Shown here in pieces: positions 13,792-24,900 of a DNA stretch of 64,000 bases. This DNA comes from Oikopleura dioica. Its lineage: Eukaryota > Animalia > Chordata. The stretch lies in contig OU015567.1 in assembly GCA_907165135.1 (NCBI GenBank), positions 1,364,001-1,428,000 on the forward strand, in the 5' to 3' direction. A program made the position numbers and the translations under genes. The stretch's first letter is position 1. Each line of letters starts with the position of its first letter. Below the pieces are notes generated by a model. That model worked only from the letters and a program-made list of their open reading frames with translations, was not told the origin of the DNA and made no database searches.

Positions 13792-13901
13792 GCAAAAACA
13801 CCTTTTTTCATTCTGACACTTGTCTTTTACCAATCAAATGACATTGAATAAATTAGATAATTTGATAGACGATTTTTTATTCTAGGTAATCAACATTGCA
13901 G

Positions 13902-16900
13902 TTAACAAGTAAAATCGCCTGAGACTTCGAAAAGAACAGGTTGGTGATTTTGATTTGTCTTAACGCCGATGACTTCTTGATTGATGATTTCGTCGTCAAC
14001 AATTTTGATTTTCTCGATTGGAAAAAAGTCCAGCGTGTCCCTTGATTGCGCGCCACAGACGATGAAGATGTCGTTCTCGATTCTCAACGCTGATGATTCT
14101 TTTGAAGCCTAAAAGAAGCCAATGATTTATCGGAGTTTTAGAATAAAAGAACCTCTTGAAGAAGCCCAATGAGACTCCATGCTCCATCTTTCATCAGCCA
14201 AATATCTCGAGTAAGATCGGAAAGATCATCATCGCGTCCTCCAGCCATAATCATTGCACCACTGTCCAAACCAATTAAAACATGAGTCCTAATCGATCTA
14301 AAATTCTAGTAAGTGAAGGAACCTAAGTTGAAGTATTACTTTGGATGATCAGCAAGGCTTGTCCAGCCGGTCGGAGTCAACGTTTCTACTTTCTTGAAGG
14401 GGCCAACATTCAGAGCGGTACTACCACTGACGGATGTTGGTTGGCCTTGATACATAGCCAATTTTCCAAAGTCATGACGGTACTGCGGGACAAAAGTAGG
14501 TGTTGTCGTGAAAGTATCGAATACTTCACATCTTTTGCCCTTATTTTCGTGTGTCAAGATACTTGAGACAGGGCTTGCTATGAGAGAATTTCATGTTTTC
14601 AAGGAACTTATTTTTTAGAAAAAAGTTTCCTTCTGCATTTATCTATTAGATAAAGATGTATATTAAGGAGGTAGTCCCTGCTTTTCGCGATTTCGGCACT
14701 TTTTGAGCAGCGCTCAGACAAATTTGGGCTAATGTTTTAAAAAGCTCATCCCTTCGTCTAGAGTTGCCACTAAACGAAATTCTTCAATTCTAAAAAGTCA
14801 TAATGTAAAGCCTTCGAGCAAAAATTGTGTCTCAAAATCATGAAAAAAATAGTTTTTTAAAGAAGATTAATCTTAAGGGTAGGGTGGTAAATTTGGCCCA
14901 AAGCAGAGCTCATTAACTCTGGACTTATGAATGCTAGAATGCTAGTAATGGCTTAAAATAAAGATCTATCCTAGATCTTCTGAAGTTTTTTCTGTTCTGT
15001 CAAGAAAAAAATCACTTCCGGAGGCTTCAAAGTTGGCATCTCAGCCAAAATCGCAAAAATAGCCAATATACAAGGCTCAAAAACTCCGAAATTTGGCGGA
15101 AATCTTGGAAAAACAAAAAACCTTCTGTAATTCAGAGGATCTAGGAAAGATCTTTATTTTAAGCCATTACTGGGTACTCTAACATTTATAAGTCCAGAGT
15201 TTATGAGCTCTGCTTTGGCCGAATCGACCACCATAGCCTTAAATTATCTTTATAACAGACATTTATTTTTGTATTTTCATAATCTTAAGGTCATCAAAAA
15301 TCGAAATTAAGCTATAATTTTGGATAAAATAGTCAAAAAATCTATTGATTTTGAAATTTTTCATCAAAATTACACTTTTCAAGTGCGATTTTGGGGGCTT
15401 TTCTCTAATATTTGGAAAAAATGATCAATACCAAATTTGTAGCTCTTCTAACGAGCTTTCAGAATCTTTTATAAAAATTGGAAAATTCCGAGTTTGTCAA
15501 AACCGAGGACTACCTCCTTAAATATAAATTCTAGGACTTTCCATAGCGAGCCCTTGCTATACATCTCATCGAAGCAGACAAGTGCTAAAATATTAAATTT
15601 GAGGTCATTTTAATGGTTTTGATTAAACACGAATAGAAGAAAATGCAGTTCTACGGAACCATTGCACTGTTACCTTGCATTCCACCGTCAATGGCTACTG
15701 CGGCAGCTTTAGCGCCATAATAAAAGGTGAATTTTACTGGAAGCTCAGTGAACTCGCACCCATTCAGCATCGCTATCTTTATCAAGTCATCAGACAATGC
15801 TTTACTTTGACATAACTGTACCTTTTGCGCGCTTTCCATTCCTCCCCAGCCTCCTCCGAAAACATACATTTCTCCACGAACGACCGCAAAATGGCTTCCG
15901 TGAGTGTAGAGGGCAAAGTTGTTGGTTGTTGGGTCAATTGTCGAAGGCGCACTGACCGATACATCCGTCATTTCTCCACTTGAAGAGATCGTGTAAGCAT
16001 CTGCCATGTACCTTGGGAACACCAAAATGTGCTTCTCACAACCTTTTAAGCATTCCGAATCGTCAACATGACAGAGATTTATCTTAGAATAATTTTTTCC
16101 GATATTTTTCACAAAGAATTTAAAGAGAGCATCCTCTTGTTTGTCATTTCCTTGGTGAATTATGAACAAGAGGACACATGTGTGAATTCTAGGATCGGCG
16201 CCCACCATCGACCAAATCGACATTGTCGGGTGTCGGGCCGGGTTTTGGTCGGACCGACCCGACACGACATTGAGATTTGTCGTTGGTCGGTCGATGGTCG
16301 GGTTTTTGTCGGGTCTGTGGTCGGTTTTCGCTCATTCTCGGGCATGTTTTCTGACATAAATTCACTTCTGTTATTCGAGAAGTTTTTCATATTTTAATGT
16401 CACTAGCGCCAAACCATTTAGAATTTAGGACATTTATAAAATCGAAAGTTTCATAACCCCCATCTTTCGATTTTGAAGCTTTTTCATCATTCTCATTGGT
16501 TAAAAAAAAACCGACCACCGACCCGACCAAAAGGCCGACTCGACCCGACCCGACCCGACCATGATTTCGGCCATTTCAAAGTGGCCCGACCCGACCCGAC
16601 ATTGAAAAAGGGTGGTCGATGCCGACCCTAGGTGTGAATGGGATGAACAAGGTCAACACTTATTTTTATGGATAAGCTCACCTCGCAATCAAGCGTCATT
16701 TCGGTCGTTTCAGAGCTTCCAGGAAATATAAAATTAGTATACTCAAATTGAACAACGGAATCACTCGTCGACTCGGATCGCCAACGAAAATTCAGTCCAT
16801 TATCGATGGGGCAAAAATTGTCGACAAGCATGAGACTGTAACCAGCGTCCGTGTTATCAGTGACGGTGCATCTTTTGACGATGAATTTGGTGTCATTTAT

Positions 16901-18369
16901 CAATTCTGGAGCTTCGATCTGGGCGAATAGAGTGTTTCCAACAGTGATACTTGTCGATGAAAAATCAACTTTGTTTGTGTAATCCGCACTGTCGTAGAAA
17001 TTAATTGAATAAGACAGGTCAACGAATGGATTTCCAGCGTTGATCGTTTGAGAAACGGTTACTGCGTTGCTTTTTTTTGGTTTAAAAAAATACCATGAAA
17101 AAAAGTCGTCGATGTTAATTTCAAACCAAGCCTTGAATTGTAGTGGCTTGTTGCGGTCATGGTACTGTTAAAATGGCAAGCAAAGTCAAAAGTCCGTTTC
17201 CGCCCAATTACAACGCCATTTGCAACTCTACTTCCAACAGGGCTGGCAAATTAGGGTCCCGCCAGCCGCACTAATTTGAGTTAGAACCCTATTGTTAGAA
17301 CCCTAACTCTCATTTTATAACTTTTTAGTGCGATTAGTACGAGTTGGAAAAAGCCGCACTAAAATCGTCCTAAAAGAGGCGCGCGCTTATTGGTCCGCCA
17401 ATCATGGCGGGTCATTCGTTTTTCTCATCCATTCAGCTCCATTCTTTTTCAATCTTCCACCAATTTGTCCTCCGCGCCTGGTGGGAAGCGCGCGCCGATT
17501 GGATGATGAAAAAGAGCCTCCAAATTAGTACGGTTAGGGCGGCGATTCAGTCCTAATAGACGAAAAAATATCAAGGAAAAAAAATAGGACGGGTAGGACG
17601 GGGATGCCGCACTAATTCGCACTAATTTTGAGTTAGAACCCTAACAATTTTTCGGTAGTGCGGCTGTTAGGACCCTAATTTGCCAGCCCTGACTTCCAAT
17701 ATGAAGAGTATTGCTGAAAGAAAAAGTGCCATTCTTTTCGAGGAAATTTGATTTTTTACCTAAAAAATATCCTTTTGTTGGATCCTATTTCCGTTCCTGG
17801 GTGTCGACAACAGTTCCACAATCGTAAAACGACGATGGTGTTATCTTCCAATGAGTAGTACCGTCTTCAACAGCTGAGCAGTTGTCGTGATTGAGATGGA
17901 TTGATGCTTGATCAACTTCAGGAACAACACATTTATCGAGAAAAATAGTCGGCCCCGATGCTCCACAGGTAATGTTTCCTTTATCCGGCGCAATGAGACA
18001 TGTCTTTCCGTCCGAATCTAACCGTCAAAATAAAACTTTAAAAGTAGTAAAAAAGCCATACCAAGCGTCCAGCAGTCTGGACAGGAGCAAACTCCCTCTG
18101 AGCAAAAGTGGGAGCAGCCTCCATTATTTCCATCGAAACAAGTTGCATGAACTGCACTTGCCAAAATGACAAAGCTTTTTGAGTTCCAAATTAATAGTCA
18201 AAAAAACGCTAAGTCAAAAATTTAGACAAAATTTTGGTTAAAAATTTCAATAATTTTGTTGATTTGAGCCTCCTCCCCGAAAAGCATGGAGTTGCAATAT
18301 GTTTATCAAAGACTGACCTTAAATAATTGAAACGGTTAAAATATTCGAACTTATCCTTATAGGCTTCAT
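13902..18369 (-). CDS. Paralogue B1: signal peptide + EGF + ZP-N/ZP-C module + kelch-like beta-propeller
   Basis: MKPIS... signal across a GA-AG intron (18175-18355). EGF motif CFDGNNGGC, ZP motifs FDFACHF and FIVKRCTV...CPIDN...FEYTNF...LDCE, propeller motifs FAVVRGEMYVFGG and LTPTGW. One ZP-N exon is interrupted by a hAT MITE, so function depends on splicing. Confidence 0.8.
14667..15517. mobile_element. TTAA-targeting (Kolobok-type) MITE, outer element, in a B1 intron
   Basis: TTAA at 14663-14666 and 15518-15521. TIR GGAGGTAGTCC, perfect 11 bp. Absent from paralogue B2. Confidence 0.88.
14877..15238. mobile_element. TTAA-targeting MITE nested in 14667-15517, with ~105-bp imperfect TIRs
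   Basis: TTAA at 14873-14876 and 15239-15242. GG...CC termini. The arms share CAAAGCAGAGCTCAT, CTCTGGACTTAT and GTAATGGCTTAAAATAAAGATCT. Confidence 0.88.
16188..16631. mobile_element. hAT-like MITE with CCGAC(C) motif arrays, intronic in B1
   Basis: GTGTGAAT repeated at 16180-16187 and 16632-16639. Termini CTAGGATCGGC / GCCGACCCTAG. Empty site in B2 near 22240. Confidence 0.8.
17238..17691. mobile_element. hAT-type MITE inserted in a coding exon of B1
   Basis: Perfect 8-bp TSD ACTTCCAA (17230-17237, 17692-17699) and perfect 22-bp TIR CAGGGCTGGCAAATTAGGGTCC. B2 has the empty site within codons IGSRVA near 22850. Confidence 0.95.
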
Positions 18370-18644
18370 CAGCGCTTGAAGAGCTCTTTCTCTAAAAAAA
18401 AATAAAACGCTATCAGTCAAGTACGTCGCGCTTTAACCCAAAAGAACGTGGCTGCCCACGTTTCTAAAAGAAGGAATTCTTGAATTGCACCCAAAGGCAA
18501 GTTAAAGTTCGACGTTTTCTCTCAAGTTTTAATTTATCATGTGATCATTCTGCAACGTTTACATTGTTAACTATAAAACACAGAATTTCATTTTTGATTT
18601 TTTATTTTCAAAAAAAAAAATACAAAATTTGTAAAGCAGGAGTT

Positions 18645-19311
18645 ATTCTTCAGTTTCTTCATCAATTGTGAAAAGTCCCTCTTCATACATGACTCGCTGG
18701 AGAAATTGCAGAAATTGAAACGCATGAACATAAATTCCATCTTGAATAGAAAATAATTATCATCGATTAATCGAATCATTATTTACCTTGACGATTTATC
18801 TTGTTAATCGGTTCTACAGGAAATCCGGTTCGAGGGACAGCGCTTCTCATGAACTGGCTACTTTGAAGTTGTTTCCGATCCGTTTCGAGAGAAAAACATG
18901 ATTCTTGAAATTCATTCTTCCAAGAGCACTCCTGATTTGAACACTGACACGAGTTTTCTTGTCGACTTCCTCCGCATGAGTACTCGCATGAGCGGTGATA
19001 TCTTTTTCAAATGGTGCATTTGAATTCTGCCACCGTGCTCGGAAGATCTTTCAAGAAAACGCTGAACTTTCCTGAAATATATTGATAGTCTTCAAGAAGT
19101 TAGGTTTTATCGAAATCATTGAAGATAACTTCATACTTGCGAAAATTCTTAAAATTCTTGAGTTTCTTCTTTGAGACTTCACTGAGGTCTCCGATTCTCT
19201 TTCTTTAATTTTTTTTATTCTCTATGAAATTATGAAATATAACGTCCTCAGTTTCCATCACAATCTCGCTTATTTTTGATGTTGGCTTTTGATTTTTTAT
19301 CGAAATTTTAC
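18645..19311 (-). pseudogene. 5'-truncated copy (A1) of gene A2 (23789-24900)
   Basis: Colinear similarity to 23790-24530. Lacks the 5' exons and the Thr repeat. In-frame TGA (ACC ATT TGA) where A2 reads CTIERY. Confidence 0.8.
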
Positions 19312-19794: not shown

Positions 19795-22700
19795 TTAACA
19801 AGTGAAATCAGCTGATACTTCGAAAAGAACGGGTTGTTGATTTTGATTTGTCTTACTGCCGATGACTTCTGAATTGATGAGTTCGTCGTCAACGATTGTT
19901 AGTTTCTCAATCGGAAAATAGTTCAGCTTTTCTGTTGATTGCGCACCACAGACGATGAAGATGTCGTTACCGATTCTCAACGCCGATGATTCTCTTGATC
20001 TCTGAAAAATTGTTCGTTAGATTGTTATTAATGAGAAAGGATTAACGTCGCTAAGAAAACCAATATTACTCCATAAGCCGTCCTTCAGAAGCCAAATTTC
20101 TCGAGTAAGGTCAGGAATATCTGGATTGTATCCGCCAGCCATCACCATTGCACCACTGTCCAAACCAATTAAGACATGAGCCCTTATATTTCTGAAATTC
20201 TAGTCCGCGTAAGAACCTTAGTTAAAGTATTACTTTGGATGATCAGCAAGGCTTGTCCACCCGGTTGGAGTAAGCGTTTCAACTTTCTTGAAGGGGCCAA
20301 CATTCAGAGAGCTTGTTCCACCGGCGGTTGTTGGTTGGCCTTGATACATACCCAATTTACCAAAGCCATGATGGTACTGCGGGACAAAAGTAGTAGGTGC
20401 TGTCGTAAAAGCATCGAATACTTCACATCTTTTGCCCTTATTTTCGTGTGTCAAGAGACTTCAGACTGGGCTCGCCACGATAGAAAATAAAATTTTTCGA
20501 AGAAATATATTCAACGAGAATTCAGCTTGCTTCCTAGTTTATATAAAATAATGATAATGATAATTATATCAATACTTAAATATTATAAATATTTTATTAA
20601 TTATAGGACTTTCTTAAGCCCTTGCTTTACATCAAGGTGAAGGGCGGCCACGTTCCAATTTGCGAACACCGTTCGCAACAAAGTTAAAAAGTGTCCCGAA
20701 TATCCACTTCGCGCATTTTCAACTCAGTTGGGTTGGCAGAAGCAGTCTTCCTCTACCGCTGGGACACATTTTGAAAAAAGTTAACTTCTCAATACACAGG
20801 CGCGCGACTAAGCGCTCAAAACACGGGGTCGGGTTAGGGTTAGGGTTAGGGTTAGGGTTAGGGTTAGAGTTAGGGGTCGGCGCGCAAAATTTGGAGTGTG
20901 ATAAAGAGCGCTCAAGACTTTTAGCTCTAACTTGCGTTTCCGGCAAGCAAAAAAGTTACTAAACATATTGCTGGAAAGCTTGAACACTCACCTATCAAGA
21001 TTTACAATTAATTCTGCAAAACACTTTTTGAATTTAAAGCTGAAGATTGAAAGATAAATCCAGTGCAAAACGCCACCACTTTTGAGAAAAGTTCCAAAAT
21101 TTCACAAAGTGGTTCGTTTCAGTCATCTTAGCTCACATTTCAAAAATCAGGTCAAATGGATAAGCACAAGAGAAATTACGGCGGCTCAAAATCGCCGTGG
21201 TCGGTTGAACCGACCACGTGTATTGAGAAGTTAAGAACGATTTTTCGATTTTGCGAACGCCCTTCGGAAAATCGCCGCCCGCCACCCGTATATCGTATCA
21301 AAGCAGACGAGAGCTAAAAACATTTAAGGATATAGTAATCGCACTTGGTCATTTGACGCTTGAATTCTTCAGTAACTTATAAATTATAATAAGTTATTAG
21401 TTGTTATAAGTTATAATGCTAGAGTTTCCTGCAATGACTCAAAATTACTTTTAGAGAAAATTTAGAAAAGTGACAAGAGCTTTTATCAAATAACCCTCAA
21501 GAACTGGTAGTCATAGTGCACATGAGGATCCCTGAAAATCACGAAATTTGGCATTTTCCGCAGAGTAGCCAACTTTGACGGGCTAGAAAAAATATTTCTT
21601 CTTTGAATTTCGAAAAAAAATTCTTGTTAATAGTAAAAACTAGGATACCCAGGAATTCAAGCTCAAAGTAGGCCTCAACGATGACTATACCCTTACTAAG
21701 CTTTTTTACGTTTTTATCAGCAAGGAGAAAGATGAAATGTAGTGGTACTGTTACCTTGCATTCCGCCGTCTATGGCGAGTGCTGCAGACTCAGCGCCATA
21801 ATAAAAAGTGAATTTAACTGGAAGCTCGGTGAACTCGCACCCATTCAGCATCGCTATCTTTATCAAAACATCAAAAAATTAATAACTTGGACATTATTAT
21901 ACCTTTTGATTGCTTTCCATGCCATAGCCTCCTCCAAAAACATACATTTCTCCACGAACGACCGCAAAATGACTTCCACCAGTATATTCAGCAAAATTAA
22001 TTGTATTTGAATCTATTGTCGATGGCGCACTGACCGATACATCCGTCATTTGTCCACTTGAAGAGATCGTGTAAGCATCTGCCATATAACTAGGGAACAC
22101 CAAAATGTGCTTCTCACAACCTTTCAAGCATTCCGAATCGTCAACATGGCAGAGATTAATCTAAAAATATTTTTTACGATATTTTTCTCAAAGAATTTAA
22201 AATTTTGTAATTTGCCTGGTGAATAATGAACAAGGGAACACATGTTTGAATTTAAGGGATGAAAAAAGACACCACTTATTTTTAAGGATAAGCTCACCTC
22301 GCAATCAAGCGTCATTTCAGTCGTTTCAGAGCTTCCAGGAAATATAAAATTAGTATACTCGAATTGAACAACAGAATCACTCGTCGAATCCGATCGCCAA
22401 CGAAAATTGAGACCATTATCGATTGGGCAAAAATTGTTGACAAGCATGAGACTGTAACCAGCGTCGGTGTTATCAGTGACGGTGCATCTTTTGACGATGA
22501 ATTTCGTATCATTTATCAATTCTGGAGCTTCGATCTGGGCGAAAAGAGTGTTGCCGACGGTGATACTTGTGGATGAAAAGTCAACTTTGTTTGTGTAATC
22601 TGCACTATCGTAAAAATTGATTGAATAAGACAGGTCGACAAATGGATTTCCAGCGTTGATCGTTTGAGAAACGGTTACTGCGTTGCTTTTTTTTTGGTTT

Positions 22701-23523
22701 AAAAAATTACAATGAAAAAAAAAGTCGTCGATGTTAATTTCAAACCAAGCCTTGAATTGTAGTGGCTTGTTGCGGTCATGGTACTGTTAAAATGACAAGC
22801 AAAGTCAAAAGTCCGTTTCCGCCCAATGACAACGCCATTTGCAACTCTACTTCCAATGTGAAGAGTATTGCTGAAAGAAAAAGTGCCGTTCTTTCCAAGG
22901 AATTTTGAAATTTGGCTTTCAATGAATGAGAAACTTTCTTATTTCCGTTCCTGGGTGTCAACAACAGTTCCACAATCGTAAAAAGAAGATGGTGTTATCT
23001 TCCAATGAGTAGTACCGTCTTCAACCGCTGAACAGTTGTCGTGATTTAGATGGATTGAGAGTTGATCAACTTCAGGCACAACACATTTATCAAGAAAAAT
23101 AGTCGGCCCCGATGCTTCACAGGTAATGTTGCCTTTCTCTGGCGCAATGAGACATGTCTTCCCGTCCAAATCTAACCGTCAAAATTAAACTTGAAAACAT
23201 TAGAAAACAATACCAAGCGTCCAGCAGTCCGGACAGGAGCAAACCCCCTCTGAACAAAAGTGCGAGCATCCTCCATTGTTTCCATCGAAACAAGTTGCAT
23301 GAACTGCACTTGTCAAAATGACAAAGCTTTTCGAGTTCCAAATTAACAGTCAAAAAAAAACGTTGAGTCAAAAATTTAGACAAAATTTTGGTCAAAAATT
23401 TCAATTATTTTGTTGATTCGAGCCTCCTCCCCGAAAAAAAGGGAGTTACAATGAGTTTATCAAAGACAAATTTTTAATAATTGAAACAGCGAAAATATTC
23501 GAACTTTTCCTTATAGGCTTCAT
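19795..23523 (-). CDS. Paralogue B2: signal peptide + EGF + ZP module + kelch-like beta-propeller
   Basis: Same exon structure as B1, starting MKPISFVILTSAVHATCFDGNNGGCSHFC. One propeller exon is interrupted by the 20634-21288 insertion, with a TAA in the orphaned piece, so B2 is either rescued by a new donor or a young pseudogene. Confidence 0.75.
20634..21288. mobile_element. Unclassified insertion carrying a TTAGGG array, inserted in a B2 exon
   Basis: Flanks TACATC (20628-20633) and TATATC (21289-21294). Imperfect termini AAGGTGAAGGGCGG / CGGGTGGCGGGCGG (10/14). Subterminal TTGCGAAC motifs near both ends. Absent from B1. Confidence 0.7.
20831..20875 (+). repeat. Interstitial telomere-type array, ~7 GGGTTA units
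   Basis: GGGTTAGGGTTAGGGTTAGGGTTAGGGTTAGGGTTAGAGTTAGGG, flanked by GGGGTC(GG) motifs. Confidence 0.9.
21328..21692. mobile_element. TTAA-targeting (Kolobok-type) MITE, intronic in B2
   Basis: Left flank TTAA, right flank TTAC. TIR GGATATAGTAATCG vs GGGTATAGTCATCG (12/14). Absent from B1. Confidence 0.8.
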
Positions 23524-23788
23524 AAGCGTTCGAAGAGGTCTTTCTCTAGAAAAAAATAAACGTTATCAATCCAGTGCGTCGTGCTCTAACCCGAAAGAAC
23601 GTGGCTGCCAACGTTCCTGAAAGGTGGATTTCTTGAATTGCACCCAAAGGCAAGTTAAAGTTCGACGTTTTCTGGTAAGTTTTTATTTATCATATGATTA
23701 TTTCGCAACGTTGAAAACACAGAATTTTATGTTTTTTTTATTTTCAGAAAAATACAAAATTTATAGGGCAGGAGTTATTCAGAATTTA

Positions 23789-24900
23789 TTATACAGTTTC
23801 TTCATCAATCGTGAAAAGTCCCTCTTCATACATGACTCGCTGGAGAAATTGCAGAAATTGAAACGCATGAACATAAACTCCATCTTGAATTGAAAATAAC
23901 TATTGTATCATTGAGTAACTGAAACATTTACCTTGACGATTAATCTTTTCAATCGACTCAACAGGAAATTCAAAGTCAGGGACAACGCTTCTCATGATGT
24001 GGCTGCTTTGAAGTTGATTCCGATCCGTTTCGATGGGAAAACACGATTCCTCAAATTCTTTCTCCCAAGAGCACTCCTGATTTGAACACAAACACGAGTT
24101 TTCTTGTCGATTTCCTGCGCATGAGTACTCGCATAAACGCTGATATCTTTCAATCGTGCACTTTAAATCTGTCGCCTTGCTTGGAAGATATTTCAAGCAG
24201 ACGCTAAACTTTCCTAAAAATATTGAAAGTTTTCAAGAAATAAGATTTTCATTCTTACTTGCGAAAATTCTTGACCTTCTGGAGCTTTTTCTCTTTGACT
24301 CCACAGAGGTCTCCGATTCTTTTTCTTTGATTTCTTTGTCTACTATTAAATCATGACGCAGAATGTCCTCAGTTTCAGTCACAATCTCGCTTATCTTTGA
24401 TGTTGGCTCTGAAGTCGTATCGATTGTTGTTGCTGATGTTGCTGATGTTGTTGATGTTGCTGATGTTGTTGTTGTTGTGGTTGATGTTGCTATTGTCGTT
24501 GTTGTCTTTTGTATCGAAATTTTACCCAAGCTTTTTGGTGTTTTTAAAAAACATCAGAAGTAAAAAATGTACTTTTTAAAAACGAGTCTTTTCCACTTGC
24601 ATCCAGAAAAAACTTTGAAAGGGCCCACATCTGTATGGCAATTACAAACTCTTTCATATTGATGAATTTTGTTAGTATCATGAAAATCAATGTCAACTGT
24701 GCATTTTGAAAATTCTGCTGAACCTTGAGGACAGTTCCACTCCTCGCAATTTGAGTCATTTTCATGCTCTTCGCAAAAACTGTTTGGGAATCATCGCACT
24801 GATCACGTGACCCAATTGAAACTGAATATTTTCTTCCTGTTTCTCGAGCAGCTTTTGTTTTCTGCGCTTGTATGAAAAATAACACGTAAAAAGCTTTCAT
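23789..24900 (-). CDS. Gene A2: secreted Cys-containing protein with Thr-rich linker; C-terminal domain possibly ZP-C-like
   Basis: Signal-like MKAFYVLFFIQA, Cys-rich segment, TTTT linker ORF 24233-24529, then CTIERYQRLCEYSC...CFPIETD...RFNFCNFSSESC. First junction unresolved. Confidence 0.6.

Follow-up and report, generated by a model that had tools for sequence, protein, structure and literature searches.

Introduction

When a transposable element lands in a coding exon, is it removed from the transcript by splicing or does it disrupt the gene? This question is raised by a locus of Oikopleura dioica contained in a window of 64,000 nucleotides (assembly GCA_907165135.1, contig OU015567.1, positions 1,364,001 to 1,428,000 of the forward strand; coordinates without a prefix are those of the window). 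Here the tandem ZP-domain gene B1 is interrupted by a non-autonomous 454-bp miniature inverted-repeat transposable element (MITE) of the hAT type at 17238-17691. The original prediction for this locus held that the insert carries a built-in splice solution adding exactly 3 nt, that an older intron of B1 has the same geometry, and that any family member landing on a target with AG at positions 6-7 would behave alike. Our analysis favors a different reading, to which we give a probability of roughly 0.55, namely that the element inserted recently and disrupts a redundant gene, in an allele that may be polymorphic.

Results

The insert is a young member of a MITE family

The terminal inverted repeats (TIRs) of the insert are 36 nt long and 92% complementary, with CAGGGCTGG (CAGGG) as first letters, and they are flanked by a perfect 8-bp direct repeat at 17230-17237 and 17692-17699, which reads ACTTCCAA or, on the sense strand of the gene, TTGGAAGT. 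In the whole window the 19-nt element end was found in two places only, the two ends of the insert, against a chance expectation of 0.01. Genome-wide counts were made on the assembly of 64,281,565 bases in 19 contigs, and revealed about 16 further full copies of the family with 8-bp duplications that were nearly all perfect. Fourteen of the 17 copies (approximately 0.3-3.7 kb) had a perfect duplication and two more had one mismatch, the remaining copy (L009) being located within a nested or rearranged cluster. Mean pairwise identity within the family was 97.5%, and the window copy differed from the family majority at three columns, with no private differences.

The site is empty in B2, the tandem paralog of B1, which aligns across it without the 462 extra bases and contains TTGGAAGT once. 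It is also empty in L021, a genomic contig from a related lineage (87% protein identity), which reads NTLHIGSRIANGVV. The insertion into B1 is very young, because the duplication is perfect, only three differences separate the copy from the family majority and both B2 and L021 have the empty site. That a hAT-type MITE lies within the ZP-N coding exon, as had been proposed from the window alone, and that it is young are thus borne out by the TIRs, the duplication, the empty sites and the family copies. No second, uninterrupted allele or haplotig of B1 was found in the assembly, and likewise none for the HUWE1-like locus described below.

The host gene and the effect of the insert on its reading frame

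B1 (~13900-19000, minus strand) and B2 (~19800-24150) are tandem paralogs with a DNA identity of 82-94% and belong to a very large O. dioica family of ZP-plus-Kelch-like proteins. All exon blocks common to the two genes are open in both, and comparison of 336 ungapped codons gave a ratio of non-synonymous to synonymous substitution rates (dN/dS) of 0.22 with a dS of 0.32. B1 was thus under purifying selection over most of its history and was still functional until recently.

The exon upstream of the host exon matches ZP-N (Pfam match on its B2 counterpart, E 1.7e-4, profile positions 1-60 of 101), and in annotated paralogs ZP-C lies about 50 residues downstream of the site homologous to the insertion; the insert is therefore placed in the second ZP-N exon. 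The frame of this host exon, NGTFSFSNTLHIGS/RVANGVVIGRKRTFDFACHFNS (the slash marks the point of interruption here and splice junctions below), is 98% identical to B2 and is conserved in L021, and the annotated paralog P0003 reads FSNTLHFGRVISNGIVIGR at the same place. A putative intron of 63 nt between the two ZP-N exons leaves 13 residues between CG and NTL, the same spacing as in P0003 and P0008, and is best read as a GA-AG intron with AG/GAA, a non-canonical type reported for O. dioica. The host exon is followed by a 32-nt GT-AG intron.

With respect to the interrupted frame, reading through the junction after NGTFSFSNTLHIGS gives 16 codons of insert and then a TAG, exactly as had been proposed, and the resulting protein would lack the ZP-C domain, the Kelch-like part and the final cysteine of ZP-N. 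A genome-wide search gave at least 150 matches to the Kelch-like module of B1 (…KxCExFDT…GWxxLxDHP…). Searches for a transcript or gene model of B1 were negative, in that a word search with the ZP-C open frame matched only a genomic Logan contig of another lineage, an HMMER search of representatives returned the same fragment and distant paralogs only, and the annotated paralog P0003, used as query, matched nothing but itself. A word search with the HUWE1-like flank for a transcript or gene model gave no match.

hAT affiliation and a candidate transposase source

The terminal inverted repeats of hAT elements begin YARNG. The CAGGG ends of the insert fit this pattern, and its duplication has the 8 bp of a hAT element. 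When the duplications of the insert's family and of a sister family were pooled (36 in all), the hAT target consensus nTnnnnAn was recovered, with T at position 2 in 26/36 and A at position 7 in 22/36; in the duplication of the B1 insert itself, position 2 is C and position 7 is A. The genome also contains at least seven copies of a 6.1-kb element which encodes Dimer_Tnp_hAT above the cut-off, has ends CAGGGTGTCAAATCGCGGG and an 8-bp duplication GTGTTAGC, and matches the MITE ends at approximately 14 of 19 positions with one gap. On sequence grounds this element is a candidate transposase source for the CAGGG-ended MITEs. The long family copy L018 was also considered as an autonomous partner and rejected, since its open reading frames (ORFs) have no Pfam match and look like a nested reverse transcriptase; this copy looks like a retroelement nested inside a MITE.

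In all of these respects (8-bp duplication, CAGGG ends, small size, lack of coding capacity, many near-identical copies, the nTnnnnAn preference and a resident 6.1-kb hAT-domain element with similar ends) the insert resembles an ordinary hAT MITE insertion of the kind that gives a polymorphic exon disruption, with no essential difference. The only unusual feature, that open frames contain about one third of the copies, is roughly what the very high coding density would lead one to expect.

The sister MITE family occupies approximately 20 sites (L043-L062), with ends CAGGGCTGGTAAATTAGCG and larger members (at least 1.0-1.5 kb in copies for which both ends are known). Perfect 8-bp duplications were present in all seven copies with both ends found, and in five of 20 left flanks an open frame of at least 100 codons reached the junction.

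The +3-nt splice: arithmetic, signals and structure

In the original prediction, a GG donor after the first two TIR bases was joined to the AG of the sense-distal duplication copy. Exons were searched singly in our analysis, and joins were made by script only, for counting frame and stops. Joining 17690 to 17230 yields ...IGS-H-RVA..., an open, in-frame product with 3 nt and one His codon added, and to this extent the proposal stands. Its further claim, that the solution is built into the element, does not. Within about 10-12 nt around the element ends there are eight donors beginning with G and four AG acceptors, and of the 32 pairs that these form, nine keep the frame and meet no stop. As a control we took every locally open frame on either strand of every family copy, and at least one in-frame, stop-free pair of this type (GN-AG) was present in 21 of the 22 contexts, with a mean of 3.8. 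An in-frame pair near the element ends is therefore a chance expectation, and the +3 solution is not evidence of a built-in splice.

Nor do the splice signals point to this pair. The proposed donor TCA/GGGCTG matches the CAG/GTRAGT consensus at two of nine positions, versus five of nine for each of the rival donors GGAA/GTCAGG, a canonical donor in which the CAGG end follows the GT that closes the duplication, and CAG/GGCTGG. With the first acceptors these better donors give +11, -1, +16 and +4 nt, with stops in all, and the sole in-frame result reported for them is the -6 obtained from GGAA/GT with the fourth AG. On the acceptor side, CCAG/CCCTG lies 12 nt upstream of the proposed acceptor, and is thus both earlier and nearer the consensus; with the proposed donor it gives +15. 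For GA-AG donors of O. dioica an A at +3 and a conserved AG at the exon end are reported (PMC7072748), neither of which is present at TCA/GGG. An annotated paralog gene has six GT-AG introns and one GA-AG intron, CACAG/GACTGA, which has the exon-end AG and a C at +3; the exon-end AG is thus found in this sole non-canonical intron of the paralog as well as in the putative GA-AG intron of B1 (CCCAG/GAACGG).

Sense-strand RNA of the insert is predicted to form a hairpin of -197 kcal/mol (z = -8.7), the basal helix of which (23 bp) would start at the C of CAGGG. Both the CA/GG donor and the CCAG acceptor would be paired in this helix, and the acceptor AG in the target duplication would lie just outside it.

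Other exonic copies of the family

Three other copies split Pfam-confirmed coding exons, those of a Kringle domain (E 1.8e-12), a galactosyltransferase (E 8e-23) and a HUWE1-like protein with UIM and WWE domains. Their sense duplications are TACTGCCC, GTCTGAAT and ATCTGATC, respectively, and AG at positions 6-7 was found in none of the three. Only the B1 copy among the four confirmed exonic copies therefore has AG at these positions (1/4), or one of seven when uncertain ORFs are counted; inclusion of the sister family gave 2/12 (P = 0.17). The hAT preference for A at position 7 works against a G there. The general rule proposed for AG-bearing targets was accordingly negative in this test, at small n.

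A splice built into the element would be expected to use consensus-like sites that work at every insertion, and no pair gave a stop-free, in-frame product across all of the exonic copies. The +15 pair, which is target-independent (2 + 5 + 8 nt), fails in the HUWE1-like copy owing to a TGA in the duplication; in that copy, the only removals that keep the frame delete 2-11 codons. Open frames of at least 100 codons contained 6/17 family copies, compared with 51% of random window positions. This is at most a mild depletion, and it fits either very recent, unselected insertion or harmlessness. Orientation of the exonic copies (5 to 2) was uninformative.

The intron cited as a precedent

The fixed intron of B1 at 14562-15553, which the original prediction had cited as having the same geometry, carries 13-nt inverted ends, AGGGCTTGCTATG, at its exact limits and has no recognisable target duplication. 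These ends, together with nested foldback repeats, indicate that it is probably derived from a transposable element (TE). A canonical GT is located 9 nt upstream (15562-15561) and is also in frame, as AT/GTATAG in B1 and AT/GTAAAG in B2. With a canonical donor at hand, no duplication and inverted ends of 13 nt only, this intron does not count as evidence for a built-in solution. An attempt to fix the exon ends of this intron by means of intron-less paralogs was abandoned: the ALICF-KxCExFD loop varies in length from approximately 4 to 15 residues, which makes the GG and GT readings of the intron inseparable.

Weighing of the explanations

In the reading that we prefer, a non-autonomous hAT-type MITE would have inserted itself only very recently into the second of the ZP-N coding exons; the result is most likely a young allele with reduced or lost B1 function. 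The allele may be polymorphic or heterozygous; the O. dioica assembly is a merged haplotype of one cultured male with approximately 3.6% heterozygosity (PMC8008620). Its recent origin and the redundancy of B1, which has B2 and many other paralogs beside it, would explain why such an allele persists. Were the spliceosome to act on the insert, the donors GGAA/GT or CAG/GG and the acceptor CCAG/CCCTG would be favored, in combinations which mostly shift the frame, and the weak CA/GG donor giving +3 would be disfavored.

Several observations weigh against this reading. Loss of B1 function is itself deduced from the DNA. The B1 copy could be removed in frame in several ways (+3, +15, 0 and -6), and 11% of the introns of O. 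dioica OKI2018_I69 are non-GT/AG (PMC8008620). In addition, the same family splits a single-copy HUWE1-like gene and the Kringle and galactosyltransferase exons, and so many exonic copies would be a heavy load if all of them were null, which hints that the inserts may be tolerated, perhaps by splicing.

These observations lead to the alternative that the insert is a nascent intron, in which a permissive O. dioica spliceosome would remove the MITE through some frame-keeping GN-AG pair, leaving a near-neutral allele that may become a new intron. Candidate pairs are CA/GG with CCAG/CCCTG (+15), CA/GG with GTAG/ or AGG/GC with AGAG/ (both 0), GGAA/GT with AGAG/ (-6), and the proposed +3 pair, so that at least four in-frame, stop-free products can be written. 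B1 apparently has a GA-AG intron already, as does the annotated paralog, at least four of the 17 family copies lie in bona fide exons without strong depletion, and a related larvacean, Fritillaria borealis, has documented introns of MITE origin (PMC11282704, PMC13326754). Set against this are the chance-level frequency of in-frame pairs in the control contexts, the lack of any one donor-acceptor pair that serves all exonic copies, the frameshifts produced by the best-matching donors, and the long predicted helix in which the element ends would be locked. We therefore regard a nascent intron as possible, though doubtful.

A second alternative, that B1, situated in a TE-rich spot, was decaying as a pseudogene before the MITE arrived and that the MITE struck dead DNA without consequence, would account for the two further TE-derived segments in B1 (an intronic MITE at ~16189-16631 and the TE-filled intron 14562-15553) and for a TE insertion at a small exon of B2; it is improbable in view of the open exons shared with B2, the dN/dS of 0.22 and the intronic position of the other B1-specific insert. 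The exact +3 model, as a property of the whole family, is very improbable: its product is open, the loop tolerates length change (P0003 is one residue shorter there) and its acceptor would be unpaired, but its donor is poor and paired, an earlier acceptor precedes its own, AG at positions 6-7 is scarce in exonic targets and its precedent has a canonical alternative, so that beyond the arithmetic neither the splice nor the general rule is supported.

Relation to known systems

Introners (Huff et al. 2016, as cited in PMC13326754; Gozashti et al. 2022, PMC9860276) resemble the B1 insert in being non-autonomous DNA transposons with TIRs and a duplication in coding sequence, and the duplication could likewise supply one splice site, as in the +3 model. 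Introners are defined by splicing and have good splice signals, whereas the B1 insert has weak or non-canonical donors only and belongs to a family with no single pair serving all exonic copies. The MITE introns of Fritillaria borealis (Henriet et al. 2019, as summarised in PMC11282704 and PMC13326754) share with the insert a larvacean host, inverted ends with duplications, and a U2 tolerance of non-GT/AG sites. As summarised there, they are mostly AG-AC or AG-AT after an exonic TAC and depend on lineage-specific U2AF duplicates, while the splice proposed for B1 is GG-AG after an exonic GTCA and shows neither the AG-AC or AG-AT ends nor the TAC described in PMC11282704.

Introns of O. dioica are reported to be mostly canonical with GN-AG exceptions, and their median length is 49 bp (PMC8008620). 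The GN-AG introns of this species (PMC8008620, PMC7072748) have G at +1 and AG at the 3' end, as in the proposal, and the B1 gene family has AG/GA introns; TCA/GGG lacks the exon-end AG and the A at +3 reported for GA-AG donors.

On present evidence the locus offers yet another recent allele created by a MITE insertion, in a gene that is redundant. A broader and unlikely proposal is that young hAT-type MITEs are tolerated in O. dioica coding exons since a GN-AG-permissive U2 spliceosome would remove them imprecisely but in frame. If this were true, introns would be in the process of being born in an animal genome, with hairpin and duplication setting the splice geometry, which would bear on the massive intron turnover and the origin of non-canonical introns in O. 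dioica. In-frame splicing of the inserts in carriers, if it occurs, would make O. dioica a laboratory animal for following the conversion of transposons to introns as it happens. A by-product of the analysis is a short list of exonic copies of one family, including one in a single-copy conserved gene (Table 1).

Table 1. Positions of the insert, of the B1 and B2 features discussed and of related elements elsewhere in the assembly.
Feature	Position	Strand	Remarks
MITE insert	17238..17691	.	TIRs and target duplication; absent from B2; ~16 further genomic copies; longest ORF <=66 aa
Left terminal inverted repeat	17238..17273	.	begins CAGGGCTGGCAAATTAGGG; 36 nt, 92% complementary to right end
Right terminal inverted repeat	17656..17691	.	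pairs with left end
Target-site duplication, sense-distal copy (TTGGAAGT)	17230..17237	.	contains proposed acceptor AG 17231-17232
Target-site duplication, sense-proximal copy	17692..17699	.	final GT (17693-17692) makes canonical donor GGAA/GTCAGG
Empty target site TTGGAAGT in B2	22849..22856	-	from alignment with B1
Host coding exon, second ZP-N exon of B1	17094..17733	-	178 nt minus insert and one duplication copy; putative boundaries
First ZP-N exon of B1	17797..18024	-	intact, 95% protein identity to B2; 5' limit set by where the B1/B2 protein match starts, not by a mapped exon boundary
Putative GA-AG intron between ZP-N exons	17734..17796	-	63 nt; CCCAG/GAACGG ... CGAAAAG/AAT; eliminates in-frame TAG
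In-frame TAG on read-through	17641..17643	-	after 16 insert codons
Proposed GG-AG intron	17231..17689	-	CA/GGGCTGG ... TTGGAAG/T; +3 nt; exon resumes at 17230; frame arithmetic only
Fixed intron of B1, old, TE-filled, common to B2	14562..15553	-	992 nt; 13-nt inverted ends, nested foldback repeats
HUWE1-like copy	G000:C4:7820421-7820874 (L015:501-954)		splits 330-codon open frame with UIM and WWE; locus single-copy in assembly
Kringle copy	G000:C1:562924-563361 (L001)		splits Kringle-domain exon
Galactosyltransferase copy	G000:C1:4994097-4994916 (L005, L038)		splits PF01762 exon; 820-bp element variant
6.1-kb hAT-domain element	L040:2492-8567 (G000:C5, ~13843991-13850066)		CAGGGTGTCAAATCG inverted ends, duplication GTGTTAGC, internal tandem repeats; >=7 copies, 88-98% identical
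Long MITE copy	L018:501-4154 (G000:C3:450391-454044)		3654 bp; ORFs of 394 and 459 aa, reverse-transcriptase-like motif, no Pfam match

Other observations on the B1/B2 locus and its gene family

The family of the Kelch-like module is very large and lineage-specific, and the module is often fused to ZP, EGF or CUB domains. At ~16189-16631, in an intron 3' of the ZP-C exon, B1 has a further insert of approximately 440 bp without a counterpart in B2. This segment has ends CTAGGGTCGGC / GCCGATCCTAG and a flanking direct repeat ATTCACAC, is full of GGTCGGG repeats, and is probably another hAT-type MITE. B2 in turn has an insert at ~20640-21295 with CCCTAA telomere-type repeats and ends GGTGGCGGGCGGC / GGCCGCCCTTCACC, which is located at a small exon and donor region, at a position homologous to the donor region of the B1 intron ending at 15553; its flanking repeats have diverged (GATATAC versus GATGTAA). 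A 4,240-nt GT-AG intron, which is probably TE-filled, was observed in the annotated paralog gene chr1.g69 (Oidioi.mRNA.OKI2018_I69.chr1.g69; L039:1833-6072, G000:C4, ~607732-611971).

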